Below are positions 6,010 through 58,804 of a stretch of 64,000 nucleotides of DNA, one piece after another (position 1 is the stretch's first letter; every line of letters begins with the position of its first letter). The notes beneath the pieces were generated by a model. It was given only the letters and a program-made list of their open reading frames with translations, was not told the origin of the DNA and searched no databases. The DNA lies in contig NIVC01002013.1 in assembly GCA_002269645.1 (NCBI GenBank), positions 124,001-188,000 of the forward strand. The letters run 5' to 3'. The position numbers were made by a program, and so were the translations under genes. The stretch comes from Macrostomum lignano (Eukaryota).

Positions 6010-7392
6010 TTAGAAATAATCGTTACGATTTCCAGCTCTTCGTGCCACTGACCTCAGCGGACGCATCTCCGTGCTGTCTCCGCGGCCGCCGCCACCACCG
6101 CCAATCCCGCCAGTCCGCACCTCCTGTCGCTTCCTGTTGAGGCCTCCGCGACAGGCGCACCGCTTCACCTCGCGCTTGAAAGCTTCCGAGAAGACAAAGA
6201 AAATAAAAAAATTCGCTAAAGTGTCCAGCGTCACCAGAGCGTTGAGTCCGGAGAAGATGAGGCGCGCCTTGCCCGGACTGGAGCAGCGAAAGTGCGGGAA
6301 GAAGTGCATTAGAATGAAGTAGATGAATGTGGGCAGCTCCAGCACTGTGAAAGTGACGGCCAGAGCCAGCAGAATTCGGGTTGCCTTGCGTTTGCGACAG
6401 AGACCGCGACTGCGCGCGGGCTTGTGCGGCTGTCGCTGCTGCAGCTGCCGCTCGCGGTCGTGATGAATCACTGGGACAGCCAGGTTGTTGTGCGAGGATC
6501 CGATCGAATTGGAGCAATCAGCTGCTTCTACAGCTGGTTGCGCTCCTGTCGCGCGTGTTGACGGAGAGACCGTCGCCGAGGCGGCGTCGGAGGGCTCGCG
6601 GGCAGCCAGTAGGTGAGCGGCCAGGGCCACTGATAGCACTAGCACTGTGGGAACTGGCACTCCGGTCTGCATCACAAAGAAGAATATGATGAAGCTCTCA
6701 CACGATGAAGCTGCCTGCGCGGACGAATTCGAAACTGCAAACGGCGGTTGAGACGTGCTGGAAATCCCTGTCGCTGAATTGGCCTTCTCAGCGGCGGCGG
6801 CAGCTGCAGCAGCGGCGACTGCGTGCGCAGTGCAAGTTTTCTCCTCGAGGTGGCGAACGATGCTGAAGGCGGCGGAGCCGGTGAGAATGGCAAAGAACGC
6901 AACCAGCTGCCGCCGGCGGGTCAGCATCTCGGGCACGCGCAGCGGGAACAGGATCACCACAAAGCGGACAATTGTTAGAAAAGTGACCCACCAGTTTCTG
7001 AGCAGCAGGCTTGTGTTACTTATCACGAACTGAGCTTCCATGAAGTACTGCAGTATGCGGCCCCTGTCGCTGCCAGCTCCGCCCTCGCCCTGTCCAGCGG
7101 TGTCATTTCCAGCATGCGCAATCAGTTGCTCGATGTTGACAACGTGCAGCACAGTTAGCGACATGGCCGTGAACAGGCCCGTGACGATCAGCAGCACCAT
7201 GCCGCGGGCTCCGGCAGTTGCGTCCCGTCTGCGCAAGAAAATCCACAGGGTGAACACCAGGGACACCAGGGCCGCAACAGAGACGCACAGACTCAGCCCG
7301 TAGAAAGGCAACAGCAAAGCTCTGTACTGCGCCTCCTCCTCTGAATCCTCTTCGTCCGCAACCGGACTCAATGGGGGAGCTGGAGTACTCAT
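6010..7392 (-). CDS. Intronless class A (rhodopsin-like) orphan GPCR, peptide-receptor-like, 460 aa
   Basis: Seven hydrophobic segments. TM3 ends TIVRFVVILFP, TM6 reads ATRILLALAVTFTVLELP, and TM7/helix 8 reads NFFIFFVFSEAFKREV. Confidence 0.88.
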   Translation of the reverse strand: MSTPAPPLSPVADEEDSEEEAQYRALLLPFYGLSLCVSVAALVSLVFTLWIFLRRRDATAGARGMVLLIVTGLFTAMSLTVLHVVNIEQLIAHAGNDTAGQGEGGAGSDRGRILQYFMEAQFVISNTSLLLRNWWVTFLTIVRFVVILFPLRVPEMLTRRRQLVAFFAILTGSAAFSIVRHLEEKTCTAHAVAAAAAAAAAEKANSATGISSTSQPPFAVSNSSAQAASSCESFIIFFFVMQTGVPVPTVLVLSVALAAHLLAAREPSDAASATVSPSTRATGAQPAVEAADCSNSIGSSHNNLAVPVIHHDRERQLQQRQPHKPARSRGLCRKRKATRILLALAVTFTVLELPTFIYFILMHFFPHFRCSSPGKARLIFSGLNALVTLDTLANFFIFFVFSEAFKREVKRCACRGGLNRKRQEVRTGGIGGGGGGRGDSTEMRPLRSVARRAGNRNDYF

Positions 7393-16025: not shown

Positions 16026-17036
16026 CTAGAACTCGGTGTCCACCGTCTCAGGTCCTACTGTGGCGGCTGAAGCTGTTTTTAGCAGGCGCCCGCCGCAGGT
16101 GAGCACGCGGCGCATTCGAATTCGCAGTCTGCGCACGCCAGCTAAGTAGACTGGCGCGTTGGCGCACGAGTTGACGGTCACCAGGAAGCTGCTAGCGACC
16201 TGCAGCGGCGAGTTGAGCTCGTATTGAATGCCGGGCGCCAGCGAGCCGATGAGGTAGTAGAACGAATCCAGTGCGAATGTCGTCCCGAATAGCAATGTCG
16301 CCACCACGGCAGTTCTGGTGAGTTCCATGGCCGACCGACCGCTAGGCGTGGCCCTGACCGCGGCCACCACTCGAGCTTGCATAGTTGTCATGGCAACCAT
16401 CGGGCCAAGGTAGACGCCGATAAACCAGAGCAGCGAGTGGCCCATGAGCAGGCTGTCCATGGTGGCGGACCGGATGGCCGGCTCGCCGGGCCTGCAGGCG
16501 CCGATGTCGAAGTCGTAGCGGACGTAGAAAGCGGTGGGCAGGGCGAAGACCACGGCGGCCAGGTAGATGGCGACCATCTGGCCGGCCAGGCCGCAGCGGG
16601 CCGCCGCCCTGGATCGGTAGCTGATGGGCCTGACCACCGCGGAGAATCTCTCCCAGTTGATAAGCAGCAGGTTGCCAACTCCCACAGCCACAATGGCCCA
16701 ATAGACGGTCTGCGTGTGCCACAGGTAGCACAGGGCCGGGCCGCCCTGGTCAAGCAGGTCGGGCAGCCAGCCGGGCGAGTACAGCAGGCAGAGGAGGCAC
16801 ACGATCGAGTCGACGCCGAACTGGTGCGCTAGCAGACGGCCAGCCACCCGATTTGAAGCTCCGCCGAAGCGACCGCCGCCCGGCAGCAGTGTGGCGGCCA
16901 GGCAGAGCCAGTTCAAAGCCAGACCAACGGCTATGAGCAGAGCTCGACAGGCCAACAGAAAGGTTTCTACTGGACTGGAAGCAACAGCTTGCTGGCTGTT
17001 GACCGTTTCGTTCGTCGCATTGTCTCGAAGCTCCAT
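16026..17036 (-). CDS. Intronless class A orphan GPCR, 336 aa
   Basis: N-terminal N-glycosylation sequons and 7 TM segments. ERFSAVVRP (DRY equivalent), YLGP in TM5, NSCANAPVY (NPxxY equivalent). Confidence 0.9.
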   Translation of the reverse strand: MELRDNATNETVNSQQAVASSPVETFLLACRALLIAVGLALNWLCLAATLLPGGGRFGGASNRVAGRLLAHQFGVDSIVCLLCLLYSPGWLPDLLDQGGPALCYLWHTQTVYWAIVAVGVGNLLLINWERFSAVVRPISYRSRAAARCGLAGQMVAIYLAAVVFALPTAFYVRYDFDIGACRPGEPAIRSATMDSLLMGHSLLWFIGVYLGPMVAMTTMQARVVAAVRATPSGRSAMELTRTAVVATLLFGTTFALDSFYYLIGSLAPGIQYELNSPLQVASSFLVTVNSCANAPVYLAGVRRLRIRMRRVLTCGGRLLKTASAATVGPETVDTEF

Positions 17037-44171: not shown

Positions 44172-44732
44172 GCGACTGCAGCTGTCCGGTCTCTGCTGCT
44201 CCTGTGCCTGCTGCTCCCAGCCAGCAGCTCGGCCGAGCAGAAGAAGCCGCTGTCCGAGTACTCTGACGCAGACTTGGAGCGACTCTACAAGCAGTGGGAA
44301 GAAAGCGATCCGGACTCGGAGCCCGAGAGCACGAGCTGGAAGAGTCCACAGTTGGATCTGACCAAGGTGCCGGATTTGACAGATCCCACACTAATCCTGC
44401 AGCACTCCAGCCGTGGCCAGCCGGTGCCTCTGATTGTCCGCATCGCTGGAGCCGAGGGTCGCGACTCCGTATGGCTGGAGAATCTGTCGCGCAACTGGCA
44501 GCTGGAGATGTTCAACGCTCACATGGAGACAACTAGGCGAGTTGTAGAAGACGGCACGGTGCAACTGATCGCTCTTGATGGCTCTCAGGTGGTGAAAGTG
44601 CGCGAATATTTGCTAGCCCAGCCTAACTGTTATTCTGTCACTATCGAGGGTCACACTGTACTCGGTAGGGGCGCTCCAGCTGCTGAAGTGGCCGCTGCCG
44701 CCGCTGCTAAAGCCAAAAATACTGAACTATGA
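44172..44732 (+). CDS. MESD: MESD/boca LDL-receptor-family ER chaperone; starts at a splice acceptor with no ATG
   Basis: Signal-like LLLLCLLLP, EYSDADLERLYKQWEE, W..EMFNA, DGS....V.EYL..Q..C..VTIEG and C-terminal NTEL. In-frame TGA at 44148. AATAAA at 44801. Confidence 0.9.
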   Translation, partial: ATAAVRSLLLLCLLLPASSSAEQKKPLSEYSDADLERLYKQWEESDPDSEPESTSWKSPQLDLTKVPDLTDPTLILQHSSRGQPVPLIVRIAGAEGRDSVWLENLSRNWQLEMFNAHMETTRRVVEDGTVQLIALDGSQVVKVREYLLAQPNCYSVTIEGHTVLGRGAPAAEVAAAAAAKAKNTEL

Positions 44733-46934: not shown

Positions 46935-48008
46935 TTGACTATGGCGTCTGTAATCGACTCGGCTCTGAATCCTCCATTAATTGATTTTCGCTATGCTACG
47001 GTGTCTGGATTAATTGGCGACGAAATGTTTATTGAAAGTGTGTCCAGCAACTTTGAGAGGACGGGCGACGATTTGACTCCACTGATAGCGGATTGCACGT
47101 TCAGCGAGGAATTAGAGAAACTTTTCAGCTCGGATCCGGAAACCTTGTGTAACCTTGACGAATTGGAAAGTCTGGCCGCTCAACTGGAACGCGACAACGA
47201 ATGTCATTCGACTGTCTCTAAGGATAAAGCTGTGATCAACCGCTTGACGGCCTGGTTGGCGGAGAATAATTTAAAAGTGGATTACGCGACTGCTTCGGTG
47301 GAAGAAATTGCCAAATGGGTCCGCTACTTCTATGCGACTCTGCGTAAGTCAGACGGCAGCTTCTATTCGCCGAATACAATCGTAGGAATTCGAGCCGCAC
47401 TGTTCAGGTACTTTATGAAATTACCTGACCTCAATATCATCGCTCACGAGGCTTTTCATAGCGCGAATTTGATGGTGAAGAATGTTTGCAATGCGTATTT
47501 GAAGTCCGGTGGTCGAGTGCAGCATTACGAAGCCATTGAGTCGGACGACCTTTTCAAGCTTGCTTCTTACTTCGACAGAAGCACTCCAACACGTTTGCAA
47601 GAAGAGGTATATTTCAATGTGTTATTTTATTTCGGCAATCGCGGCAGAGAATGGCTACGAGGTCTCACTGTTCGTTCATTCCGAGAGAAGGCCCCATCAA
47701 ACGGAGCTATGGCGATCGAGTTGCAAGGCAGCACCTCAAAGCTTTATTTGTCGAAAATTACTGCCGTGCCGGGTTGGAATCAGGAGGACTTCTTTCTGCG
47801 TCCGAAACCACGAGTGAATGCGGATGGCATCTGGTACACCAAAGTACCAGTTGGAATCAACACTTTGGGGCCGTTGCTCAAGAAGATCTCTTCGAATGCT
47901 AACCTGTCCAAGCTGTACACTCCGCATTGTGTGCGACCTACAGTTGTTACGGAGCTGCATGAAGCTGGCTTTTCTGTCGAAAAAATTGCGAAGGTGACAG
48001 GTCACAAG
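46935..48008 (+). CDS. Crypton tyrosine recombinase (DUF3504/KCTD1-ZMYM-related), exon 1; start uncertain
   Basis: LRKSDG..YS..T....RAAL.RY, FGNRGRE (Arg), WYTKVPVGINTL, YTPHCVRPT (H-x-x-R), VTGHK (His). Confidence 0.9.
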
Positions 48009-48084
48009 GTGAGCAATTCTTTATTCTTAGTAAGTTTATTGACACATGGACAAGGAATTTATTAAACACCACCTCTATTCACAG

Positions 48085-55717: not shown

Positions 55718-56349
<632 letters not shown>

Positions 56350-56443: not shown

Positions 56444-56490
56444 CCTATAAAGTTGCCTCATCATTGGTTTGTACGAGCTTCACTGTTCCA
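56444..56490 (+). promoter_or_regulatory. Candidate TATA box and initiator of the prepropeptide gene
   Basis: CTATAAAG near 56445 and TTCACTG about 30 nt downstream. Candidate 5'UTR donors near 56519 and 56592. Confidence 0.3.
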
Positions 56491-56755
56491 GACTGTGGAA
56501 GCTCAAGTTGGCTCTGCAGGTGTGACTTGTTAACACAAACATATTAACAGCTGTAATATTTACATATTAACTCCTTTATTAACTGAGAACAGGTGAGAAT
56601 TGAATTGTTTGTCTCTAAAATGAGTTGGGCTTTGACTTTGAGCCGAGTGTGCGCGAGAGTATACTATGTAAATGTATTATTTTTTATTTTGTGTTATACG
56701 CTCGTACGTCTCATCAATCTGCCTCATCAGTTCTAAGATTGCTACTATTTCAGAG

Positions 56756-56825
56756 ATGCGACTTACCGGTCTGCTGGCTCTGCTGTCGGTGCTGGGGACT
56801 GCACTGTCTGCGGCACAACAACTCG
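56756..56825 (+). CDS. Secreted Cys-rich prepropeptide, signal peptide exon
   Basis: MRLTGLLALLSVLGTALSAAQQL then G|GTGAGC, phase 1. Confidence 0.8.
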
Positions 56826-56845
56826 GTGAGCTTCTGTGGGAATTC

Positions 56846-57335
56846 CTGTCTTTGTATCCACCTATCTTTGTATCTGCCTGTCTTTGTATCTACCTGTCTT
56901 TGTATCTACCTGTCTTTGTATCTACCTGTTTTTGTATCTACCTGTCTTTGTATTTAACTGTCTTTGTATCTATCTGTCTTTGTATCTACCTGTATTTGTA
57001 TCTACCTGTCTTTGTATTTACCTGTCTTTGTATCTATCTGTCTTTGTATCTACCTGTCTTTGTATCTACCTGTATTTGTATCTACCTGTCTTTGTATTTT
57101 CCTGTCTTTGTATCTATCTGTCTTTGTATCTACCTGTCTTTGTATCTACCTGTCTACCTGTCTAATGCAGATCTAATGCTGATCTGATGCAGATCTAATG
57201 CTGATCTAATGCTGATCTAATGCTGATCTAATGCTGATCTAATGCTGATCTAATGCTGATCTAATGCTGATCTAATGCTGATCTAATGCTGATCTAATGC
57301 TGATCTAATGCTGATCTAATGCTGATCTAATGCTA
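56846..57335. repeat. Two adjacent intronic arrays: 16-bp (TGTATCTACCTGTCTT) then 11-bp (CTAATGCTGAT)
   Basis: Direct tandem repeats, switching near 57163. Confidence 0.92.
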
Positions 57336-57378
57336 TTCATCTAGCATCCTGTACTTGTGAATTCGTAAAATCCCTCAG

Positions 57379-57656
57379 ATGAACAACAGTTGCGGCAGCA
57401 GAAGCCGATGCCGGATGCTGAACTCCTCACTGACCTCATTGAGAAGCGAGGCGTCGAGCTGGCGGGCGACATGTACTGCTGCGTGAACGGCATCCCCGGC
57501 TGCTGCCGCCGGCGCCGCCGCCGCTCAGCGCCGGGTGCCGACGAGGCCCAGGAGAAGCTGCGTGCCGCCTGCAGCTGCTGCCGCAGGCGGTCGGCCTTGT
57601 CGAGTCCCTCGCCCTGCTGCCTGGCCTGTCGCCAGTTGGCGCACCAGCTGGGCTGA
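57379..57656 (+). CDS. Secreted Cys-rich prepropeptide, exon 2
   Basis: CCCTCAG acceptor, phase 1. (D)EQQLRQQKPMPDAELLTDLIEKR-GVELAGDMYCCVNGIPGCC-RRRRRR-SAPGADEAQEKLRAACSCCRRRSALSSPSPCCLACRQLAHQLG*. AATAAA near 57724. Confidence 0.82.
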
Positions 57657-57980
57657 AGTTGAACAACAAAGACTTGAAAACAAAACAAAAGCAGAACAAA
57701 CAGATCGAACAAAATTCCCCTTGTAATAAACGTTTATGAGCTTTGACTCAAGCGGCTGCGACTTGCTTGCAAATGCAGCCTTTTTTCTGAATTTTGTTTG
57801 CTTCTGTTCGGCTGCAGTTGCCCAGCTCAGGGCTGCGAAATGCTTTAGGTCGATGCCGCCTTGCCGCGGGATGGAGTACTTATTGATTGGTCTCGGAACC
57901 TCCTACTCGTAATTAGACAATGAGGCTGATGAGGGCTCTCTATTATGAGCGATCGAAGATGTCCCTCTGGCAGCTCGTGC

Positions 57981-58275
<295 letters not shown>

Positions 58276-58804
58276 TGACAACAGTGGAAAATGCAGCTTC
58301 GCCAATGCTATTTTGGTCGAATGCAGCTGCTGATCCGCCCACTCGGTCAAGGGCCAGCCCAAATTTACAATTGGCAGTGCGACGCACTCTTCAACTCTTC
58401 TTGAGTCTCGCGCGCACTTCATTAATTAACTTTGCTGCTCAACTTCCGAATAATTTCAGCCAGTTTCGCCCCCCCCCCCAGTTAGGAACTAGATTCCTTT
58501 CTCCATCCTTTTCTCCACTTGGAGCTGTCTACACATTGATTCATTGTCAGCGCGAGCTGGTTAGCAGAGGAAGTGAAAATCCGGCTTCCCAGCCGCCGAA
58601 AACATGTTTTCTTTATTTCTAGCCATGACAGTTTCTAGCCTCCAAAGGTAAATAGTCTTTGAGTTAATTCAATTTTGTGGGAATTCGTAGAAATAGCTGG
58701 TTAATTTGATCCATTGTTTCAAGTTCTGCGTGACAAAGCCGTGCTGACAATTTCCTAAGAGTTTTATTATTTACTATGCCCTAGCCAATTAGCTATGAGG
58801 GAGA

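Follow-up and report, generated by a model that had tools for sequence, protein, structure and literature searches.

A putative disulfide-rich secreted peptide gene and its paralogue in the flatworm Macrostomum lignano

We analysed a 64,000-nucleotide stretch of the Macrostomum lignano genome (hereafter the window; contig NIVC01002013.1 of assembly GCA_002269645.1, positions 124,001 to 188,000) and followed up the gene Mlig027086 at window positions 56756–57656, whose two coding exons encode a protein of 115 amino acids. A cysteine-rich segment of 19 residues within this protein, GVELAGDMYCCVNGIPGCC, is shared with a diverged paralogue and is under purifying selection. The layout of both proteins suggests secretory precursors, from which the 19-mer would be released as a two-disulfide peptide, possibly an endogenous signal. 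In this model flatworm the two plausibly make up a new family of secreted peptides rich in disulfides; the product of Mlig027086 is already deposited in databases as a hypothetical protein.

Structure and copies of Mlig027086

The 115-residue product was rebuilt from the bases of the window, from an ATG at 56756 through a donor after 56825 and an acceptor before 57379 to a stop codon at 57654–57656. This is the sole donor/acceptor pair of consensus quality that gives an open frame from the signal-like exon to the cysteine-rich open reading frame (ORF). The gene is present in three near-identical copies, one in the window (L001) and two elsewhere (L002 and L004). Its features in the window are the following:

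56446–56451 (+): possible TATA box, TATAAA, about 310 nucleotides (nt) 5′ of the ATG and the same in L002 (read from the sequence, function presumed)
56593–56753 (+): possible intron in the 5′ untranslated region (UTR), CAG/GTGAGA ... TATTTCAG/AG (read in the same way)
56756–56825 (+): coding exon 1, from Met1 to the first base of Asp24; same product in the GenBank models
56756–56815 (+): predicted signal peptide, codons 1–20, with likely cleavage at SAA/QQL
56826–57378 (+): phase-1 intron of 553 nt, almost wholly two minisatellites; donor TCG/GTGAGC, acceptor CCCTCAG/AT
56845–57155: minisatellite within the coding intron, 16-mer x19
57161–57334: minisatellite within the coding intron, 11-mer x16
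57379–57656 (+): coding exon 2, from the last two bases of Asp24 to TGA; same in L002, one synonymous change in L004
57444–57449 (+): Lys46-Arg47, predicted upstream convertase site; KR also in the paralogue (codon CGA versus CGC)
57450–57506 (+): conserved 19-residue peptide GVELAGDMYCCVNGIPGCC (CC-x6-CC), candidate bioactive product
57507–57524 (+): Arg67–Arg72 (RRRRRR), predicted downstream multibasic site; polybasic run in the paralogue too
57525–57653 (+): gene-specific C-terminal module SAPGADEAQEKLRAACSCC-RRR-SALSSPSPCCLACRQLAHQL-G with six cysteines, in all three near-identical copies and not in the paralogue
57582–57590 (+): internal RRR of the C-terminal module
57651–57653 (+): terminal Gly of the precursor
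57725–57730 (+): AATAAA polyadenylation signal, 69 nt past the stop; kept in L002 and L004

The first-pass annotation of this DNA had described a 115-residue precursor made of a signal peptide, an acidic pro-region, KR, a CC-x6-CC peptide, RRRRRR and a second cysteine module ending in glycine, and every one of these features is present where it had been placed. It had also called the gene unannotated, which does not hold: three GenBank gene models encode the protein (PAA60840.1, PAA61624.1 and PAA56099.1), all named 'hypothetical protein' and with no function assigned. The product matches 'hypothetical protein BOX15_Mlig027086g1/g2' of Macrostomum lignano end to end with 100% identity, and g3 differs by A20P. 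The GenBank annotation of assembly GCA_002269645.1 was built from a genome-guided RNA sequencing (RNA-seq) transcriptome (StringTie/TACO plus de novo assembly) with ORFs called by TransDecoder (PMC5730564). Because the models derive from RNA-seq-guided assembly, the 56825/57379 junction has indirect transcript support.

An in-frame ATG also lies upstream at 56672 (ORF 56672–57187) and is unused in the 115-residue GenBank model. TransDecoder favours the longest ORF, so the omission of this ATG suggests that the mature mRNA may lack 56672–56753. The putative 5′ UTR intron would account for such a loss; alternatively, the AG at 56752–56753 could be a spliced-leader acceptor.

The exons of the three copies are almost identical, and their coding introns measure 553 nt (window, 56826–57378), 520 nt (L002, 10071–10590) and 1491 nt (L004, 3071–4561), a spread due to minisatellite copy number. 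Over 348 coding bases the third copy departs at two positions, with one synonymous change and one change in the signal peptide, versus 13 differences in about 783 unique flanking bases, a contrast that is expected to be non-significant. Three copies of this kind fit the known redundancy of the assembly (PMC5730564).

Long microsatellites flank the gene, (ATAG)x158 at 55718–56348 upstream and (GACA)x76 at 57982–58284 downstream, and micro- and minisatellites occur throughout the window, where they are the source of many long spurious ORFs. An antisense ORF of 123 amino acids (57341–57712, −) overlaps coding exon 2, and other sense frames hold further ORFs; we attribute the other-frame and antisense ORFs over this exon to its GC-rich, stop-poor composition.

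A paralogue and selection on the 19-residue peptide

When 1.84e9 representative proteins were searched exhaustively with phmmer, one true relative emerged besides the query, M. lignano Mlig010892g2 (expectation value (E) 2e-8). A second match, to a repetitive mucin-like protein (P0004), was discarded as compositional. The paralogue is found as Mlig010892g1/g2 and Mlig031427g1 on three contigs, and the family consists of two loci, each in three near-identical copies. The paralogous protein has 104–106 residues, in the order signal peptide, acidic pro-region, KR, GIELPGNIHCCVNGIAGCC, RRKRRIRRRR and SFDDQLEFDANQLP. Its first coding exon encodes the signal peptide and is followed by a phase-1 intron, which interrupts an Asp codon and holds a minisatellite, and by a second exon; a TATA-like box, TATAAAA, lies about 130 nt 5′ of its ATG.

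Common to both proteins is KR-G[VI]EL[AP]G[DN][MI][YH]CCVNGI[PA]GCC followed by a polybasic run, with 13 of 19 residues identical between GVELAGDMYCCVNGIPGCC and GIELPGNIHCCVNGIAGCC. Only the segment from KR to the end of the basic run aligns convincingly; the rest of the two proteins (signal, pro-region and tail) can hardly be aligned. The run after GCC is RRRRRR in Mlig027086 versus RRKRRIRRRR in the paralogue and is written in different codons. Over the 19 peptide codons there are eight synonymous differences in 12.8 sites and six non-synonymous differences in 44.2 sites, giving proportions of 0.62 (pS) and 0.14 (pN) and a non-synonymous/synonymous ratio of about 0.1–0.2 (about 0.11 after correction). 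The low pN relative to pS indicates that the reading frame is real and that the 19-mer is under purifying selection. As judged from the two sequences, the comparison shows the 19-mer and its flanking basic sites to be what selection preserves.

The same comparison tells which of two conflicting database models of the locus has the right frame. The older UniProt model A0A1I8JHI1 ('ELA protein') has the same first exon joined to the AG at 57442–57443, with exon 2 out of frame and rich in Pro, Arg and Leu; comparison with the paralogue rejects this frame in favour of the 115-residue one. The cysteine motif alone would be poor evidence for a gene, given that CC-x4-8-CC occurs three times in the six-frame translation of the window and is not rare. 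What takes the gene beyond a chance motif are the identical 115-residue GenBank models based on RNA-seq and the diverged paralogue with its conserved peptide.

Pfam searches with the precursor and with the mature part (E ≤ 10) matched no family, and a search of Protein Data Bank (PDB) sequences with the peptide and its flanks (E ≤ 10) gave no match. With the precursor and the paralogue as queries, word-indexed searches of 5.8e9 proteins returned M. lignano entries only. An alignment of the two-paralogue core, run against 5.8e9 proteins, gave no scored match, not even to either of the query proteins, a result that is unexplained. Within the annotated proteins covered by these searches, we provisionally regard the family as lineage-restricted. 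In the literature, the motif CCVNGI and the gene identifiers were not found in searchable papers, nothing on conotoxin-like peptides of flatworms turned up, and CCVN, GCCRR and related strings were absent from the text-form supplements of the Schmidtea prohormone paper (PMC2953531). The novelty proposed at first pass hinged on the lack of a match to a described orthologue, and none was found in these searches.

Predicted processing and possible function

The precursor reads MRLTGLLALLSVLGTALSAA / QQLDEQQLRQQKPMPDAELLTDLIE / KR / GVELAGDMYCCVNGIPGCC / RRRRRR / SAPGADEAQEKLRAACSCC RRR SALSSPSPCCLACRQLAHQL G (115 residues), with signal peptide and cleavage sites called by simple rules (hydrophobicity, −3/−1 and basic sites). 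Its N-terminal hydrophobic core reaches a Kyte–Doolittle nine-residue maximum of 2.64 at residue 5 (2.87 in the paralogue), and the SAA/Q site is compatible with the −3/−1 rule, such a small-residue cleavage motif being present in both paralogues. The pro-region of 25 residues is acidic (isoelectric point 4.2, net charge about −4) and contains no cysteine. The full cysteine pattern is CC-x6-CC-x21-C-x-CC-x11-CC-x2-C, ten cysteines in all. The 19-mer itself is anionic and hydrophobic, with a net charge of −2.3 at pH 7 (−1.2 for the paralogue) and a grand average of hydropathy (GRAVY) of about +0.8. This layout bears out the first-pass proposal of a gene for a small, secreted, disulfide-rich precursor in the order signal, pro-region, KR and CC-x6-CC, the signal peptide being a rule-based call.

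In the pathway we propose, the signal peptide (residues 1–20) would send the protein into the endoplasmic reticulum, subtilisin-like proprotein convertases (PC2/furin type) would cleave after Lys46-Arg47 and inside Arg67–Arg72, and a carboxypeptidase would trim the trailing arginines. The 19-residue GVELAGDMYCCVNGIPGCC would thereby be set free, its four cysteines forming two disulfides, probably C1–C3 and C2–C4 as in other CC-CC peptides, and would act as an intercellular signal (neuropeptide- or hormone-like) at a cell-surface receptor. PC2-dependent prohormone processing is used by flatworms (Collins et al. 2010, PMC2953531). An AlphaFold model based on a 4-sequence alignment had a mean predicted local distance difference test score (pLDDT) of 52.5 and a predicted template modelling score (pTM) of 0.26, with a low-confidence helix–loop–helix over residues 77–114 (pLDDT about 57–71).

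The second cysteine module, CxCC...CCxxC, occurs in all three near-identical copies of this gene but not in the paralogue; being gene-specific, it cannot be the part that defines the family. With no stop or splice between the two modules, the second is translated if the first is. Its CC-RRR-S junction echoes the GCC-RRRRRR-S of the first module, with a local score of 41 versus 23.1 ± 4.8 in composition-preserving shuffles, 0.2% of which reach that score. Given this junction repeat, the precursor could be the source of three peptides, 19, 19 and 20 residues long. Its last 43 residues, which hold six cysteines, may remain one small domain; alternatively, a cut at the internal RRR would produce two peptides of about 19 and 20 residues with three cysteines each, the last amidated via the terminal Gly, and these two might be disulfide-linked to each other.

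We tentatively read Mlig027086 as a transcribed gene of two coding exons for a secretory prepropeptide, which would be cut to a two-disulfide 19-mer that is most likely an endogenous signalling peptide, and we hold this reading, with its predicted secretion, cleavage, disulfide pairing, amidation and signalling role, at somewhat less than even confidence. Signalling is preferred to a venom-type or antimicrobial role because it is the mature peptide and not the signal that is conserved, the family has few members and the 19-mer is non-cationic. A conserved mature peptide, diverged signal and pro-regions and a small family are usual for neuropeptide prohormones and the opposite of what conotoxin-type venom peptides show. 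Several observations weigh against the signalling reading. Poly-Arg sites also suit furin in the constitutive secretion of any gland cell, so that a neuronal or endocrine origin is not implied. The comparative evidence consists of one paralogue pair and 19 codons, the three near-identical copies being too alike to inform on selection, including selection on the second cysteine module. The AlphaFold pLDDT is below 50 over the 19-mer region, with no confident structure there. No relative outside M. lignano emerged from the protein searches (up to 5.8e9 proteins, 1.84e9 representatives), and the gene identifiers were not found in supplements of M. lignano papers.

A somewhat unlikely alternative keeps the same processing and makes the 19-mer an exocrine product with other organisms or mating partners as its targets. 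It would be a toxin for defence or predation, a peptide of seminal fluid or reproduction, or another gland secretion, functionally convergent with framework V conotoxins. CC-x6-CC is the framework V arrangement, whose peptides act on ion channels and G-protein-coupled receptors (GPCRs) (PMC4278219). The family is seemingly restricted to its lineage, like many secretory-gland products, and its poly-Arg sites suit furin, as said above. Many gland-specific secreted proteins exist in M. lignano, for example the seminal-fluid proteins of the prostate. However, the mature peptide is conserved between paralogues old enough for synonymous sites to be near saturation, and it is in signal and pro-region that these have drifted apart. 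The opposite is usual in families of toxins and reproductive peptides, which also expand to many divergent copies; two loci only were found here. A weaker point against exocrine use is that the gene identifiers were not in the searched supplements of a paper on reproduction-related genes (PMC7336406). It is more doubtful still that the protein stays uncleaved, with ten cysteines in one fold of a small secreted protein and the Arg runs serving either as a cationic linker or as a patch that binds matrix, nucleic acid or membrane. Ten is an even number of cysteines, the polybasic run, kept by both paralogues, exceeds the length needed for cleavage, and AlphaFold places helices across 77–114, albeit in a model of poor overall confidence. 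Yet the paralogue, which has no second module, keeps KR, the 19-mer and the basic run with four cysteines, so that the 19-mer must be able to fold alone; moreover, the conserved Gly comes right after KR and the last Cys is followed at once by basic residues, as is classic for flanking cleavage sites.

An antimicrobial peptide precursor, one of the possibilities raised at first pass, would fit a small, secreted, cysteine-rich product with Arg-rich stretches, but the conserved 19-mer is anionic and hydrophobic where a cationic peptide would be expected, the arginines occupy the very positions from which processing would strip them, and Pfam gave no match to an antimicrobial peptide family; we consider this very improbable. 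Least probable of all is that the locus encodes no functional secreted peptide, but is either an ORF that arose by chance in GC-rich DNA or the gene of a nuclear protein of protamine type, rich in Arg and Cys. Exon 2 is indeed GC-rich with long ORFs in other frames and antisense, the older A0A1I8JHI1 uses another frame, and the CC/RRRRRR/CCRRR composition superficially recalls protamines. Against this stand the purifying selection between paralogues in the 115-residue frame, the conserved intron phase and architecture, the N-terminal signal sequence and acidic regions of both paralogues, which protamines lack, and the non-basic character of the conserved segment.

A bolder form of the signalling reading, which we regard as a long shot, is that the GVELAGDMYCCVNGIPGCC-type motif G[VI]EL.G...CCVNGI.GCC founds an undescribed flatworm family of two-disulfide signalling peptides that reached the framework V scaffold independently, and that the gene makes a second, two-chain product, SAPGADEAQEKLRAACSCC plus SALSSPSPCCLACRQLAHQL-amide, cut at the internal RRR and held together by disulfides.

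M. lignano is a flatworm model with working stable transgenesis and a poorly described peptide signalling repertoire. If the signalling reading is true, a conserved, lineage-restricted two-disulfide peptide would provide a new ligand family for RNA interference, transgenic reporters and GPCR deorphanisation. If the peptide is instead a gland secretion, it would be an ordinary orphan secreted peptide.

Elsewhere in the window are two intronless ORFs for rhodopsin-family seven-transmembrane (7TM) receptors, at 6010–7392 (−; Pfam 7TM_GPCR_Srw, E 3e-7, and 7tm_1) and 16026–17036 (−; Pfam 7tm_1, E 6e-13). Both may be GPCRs of the peptide type, without any implied connection to the peptide gene. An ORF at 44274–44732 (+) matches the MESD chaperone for low-density lipoprotein (LDL)-receptor-family proteins nearly end to end (Pfam PF10185, E 9e-22). 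A 376-residue ORF at 46935–48065 (+) has weak, sub-threshold Pfam matches to phage-integrase and DUF3504, a combination that hints at a tyrosine-recombinase element of the Crypton type or at a domesticated derivative of one.

Comparison with known peptide systems

Among known systems, the precursors resemble bilaterian PC2-processed prohormones (Schmidtea, PMC2953531) in having a signal peptide and one conserved short peptide between di- or multibasic sites, in the confinement of conservation to that peptide, in a possible C-terminal Gly amidation signal and in size (104–115 residues). Here the signal peptide is a heuristic call, and the basic-flanked, conserved 19-mer lies between faster-evolving flanks (pN 0.14 and pS 0.62 in the peptide). 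The flatworm precursor differs from these prohormones in fitting no named family. To our knowledge, a CC-x6-CC peptide with two disulfides is unusual among neuropeptides.

Insulin is comparable in its processing logic, the proposed second product likewise consisting of two disulfide-held chains, and unrelated in sequence. Membership of the insulin/relaxin family was rejected: it needs a B chain with C-x11-C and an A chain with CC-x3-C-x8-C, and here the cysteine pattern differs, the pro-region is Cys-free and there is no Pfam match. A further lead is resact, a sea-urchin sperm attractant, whose loop would read CVTGAPGC; in that case six of its eight residues would be identical to CVNGIPGC of the flatworm peptide (within 57477–57506). 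Presumably resact is also a small, disulfide-closed secreted peptide, and differs in its single disulfide, Gly-rich amidated tail and multi-copy precursor. The likeness spans eight residues and may be due to chance, so we treat it as a lead and not as a test.

The first-pass annotation had likened CxCC..CC..C-type motifs to the spiralian CCRFamide and CLCCY precursors, a comparison that the actual Platynereis sequences do not support. We compared CLCCY, CCWamide, CCRFamide, HFAamide and QSGamide precursors (PMC3890597 supplement) by cysteine pattern and BLASTP, and none of the five shares the flatworm pattern. CLCCY, CCWamide and CCRFamide are, like the flatworm proteins, small secreted Cys-containing spiralian precursors, with CC in their names. 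However, mature CLCCY has eight cysteines in knottin-like spacing, C-x6-C-x6-CC-x4-C-x7-C-x6-C-x-C, which the flatworm modules do not match; CCWamide has knottin-like spacing, unlike CC-x6-CC and C-x-CC-x11-CC-x2-C; and CCRFamide has C-x3-C-x11-C-x4-C followed by RFGKR, where the flatworm gene has another cysteine pattern and no RFG (PMC3890597). BLASTP gave noise only, with E ≥ 0.8 against CLCCY, CCRFamide and CCWamide and a lowest E of 0.15 (HFAamide, between signal peptides).

The likeness to framework V (T-superfamily) conotoxins, also raised at first pass, stands for layout and cysteine spacing and fails for kinship. Framework V is defined as CC-x4..6-CC with I–III/II–IV pairing, which includes CC-x6-CC, and conotoxin gene superfamilies are set by the signal peptide (PMC4278219). 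As in T-superfamily conotoxins (for example SrVA, IINWCCLIFYQCC, and LtVD, DCCPAKLLCCNP; PMC4278219), the flatworm precursors combine a signal, a pro-region, a basic site and a short mature peptide, which is small and hydrophobic and, in both paralogues, carries two adjacent-Cys pairs six residues apart. They differ in showing no detectable sequence similarity (Pfam, phmmer and PDB sequences), and there was no conotoxin among the phmmer matches (E ≤ 0.001) of the full precursor in 1.84e9 proteins. The signal peptide would presumably share about 4 of 20 residues with the T-superfamily signal in an ungapped comparison. The host is a free-living flatworm and the source not the venom duct of a cone snail (Conoidea); in the flatworm peptide nine residues precede the first of the Cys pairs, and the C-terminal flank is polybasic; and the evolutionary mode is opposite, with a conserved mature peptide and a diverged pre-pro region. 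The conotoxin likeness is convergence of cysteine pattern and not membership. If the 19-mer is indeed an endogenous signal, it would clearly exemplify convergent evolution towards the CC-CC scaffold of cone-snail venom, with a pattern of selection like that of an endogenous signal and not of a toxin.

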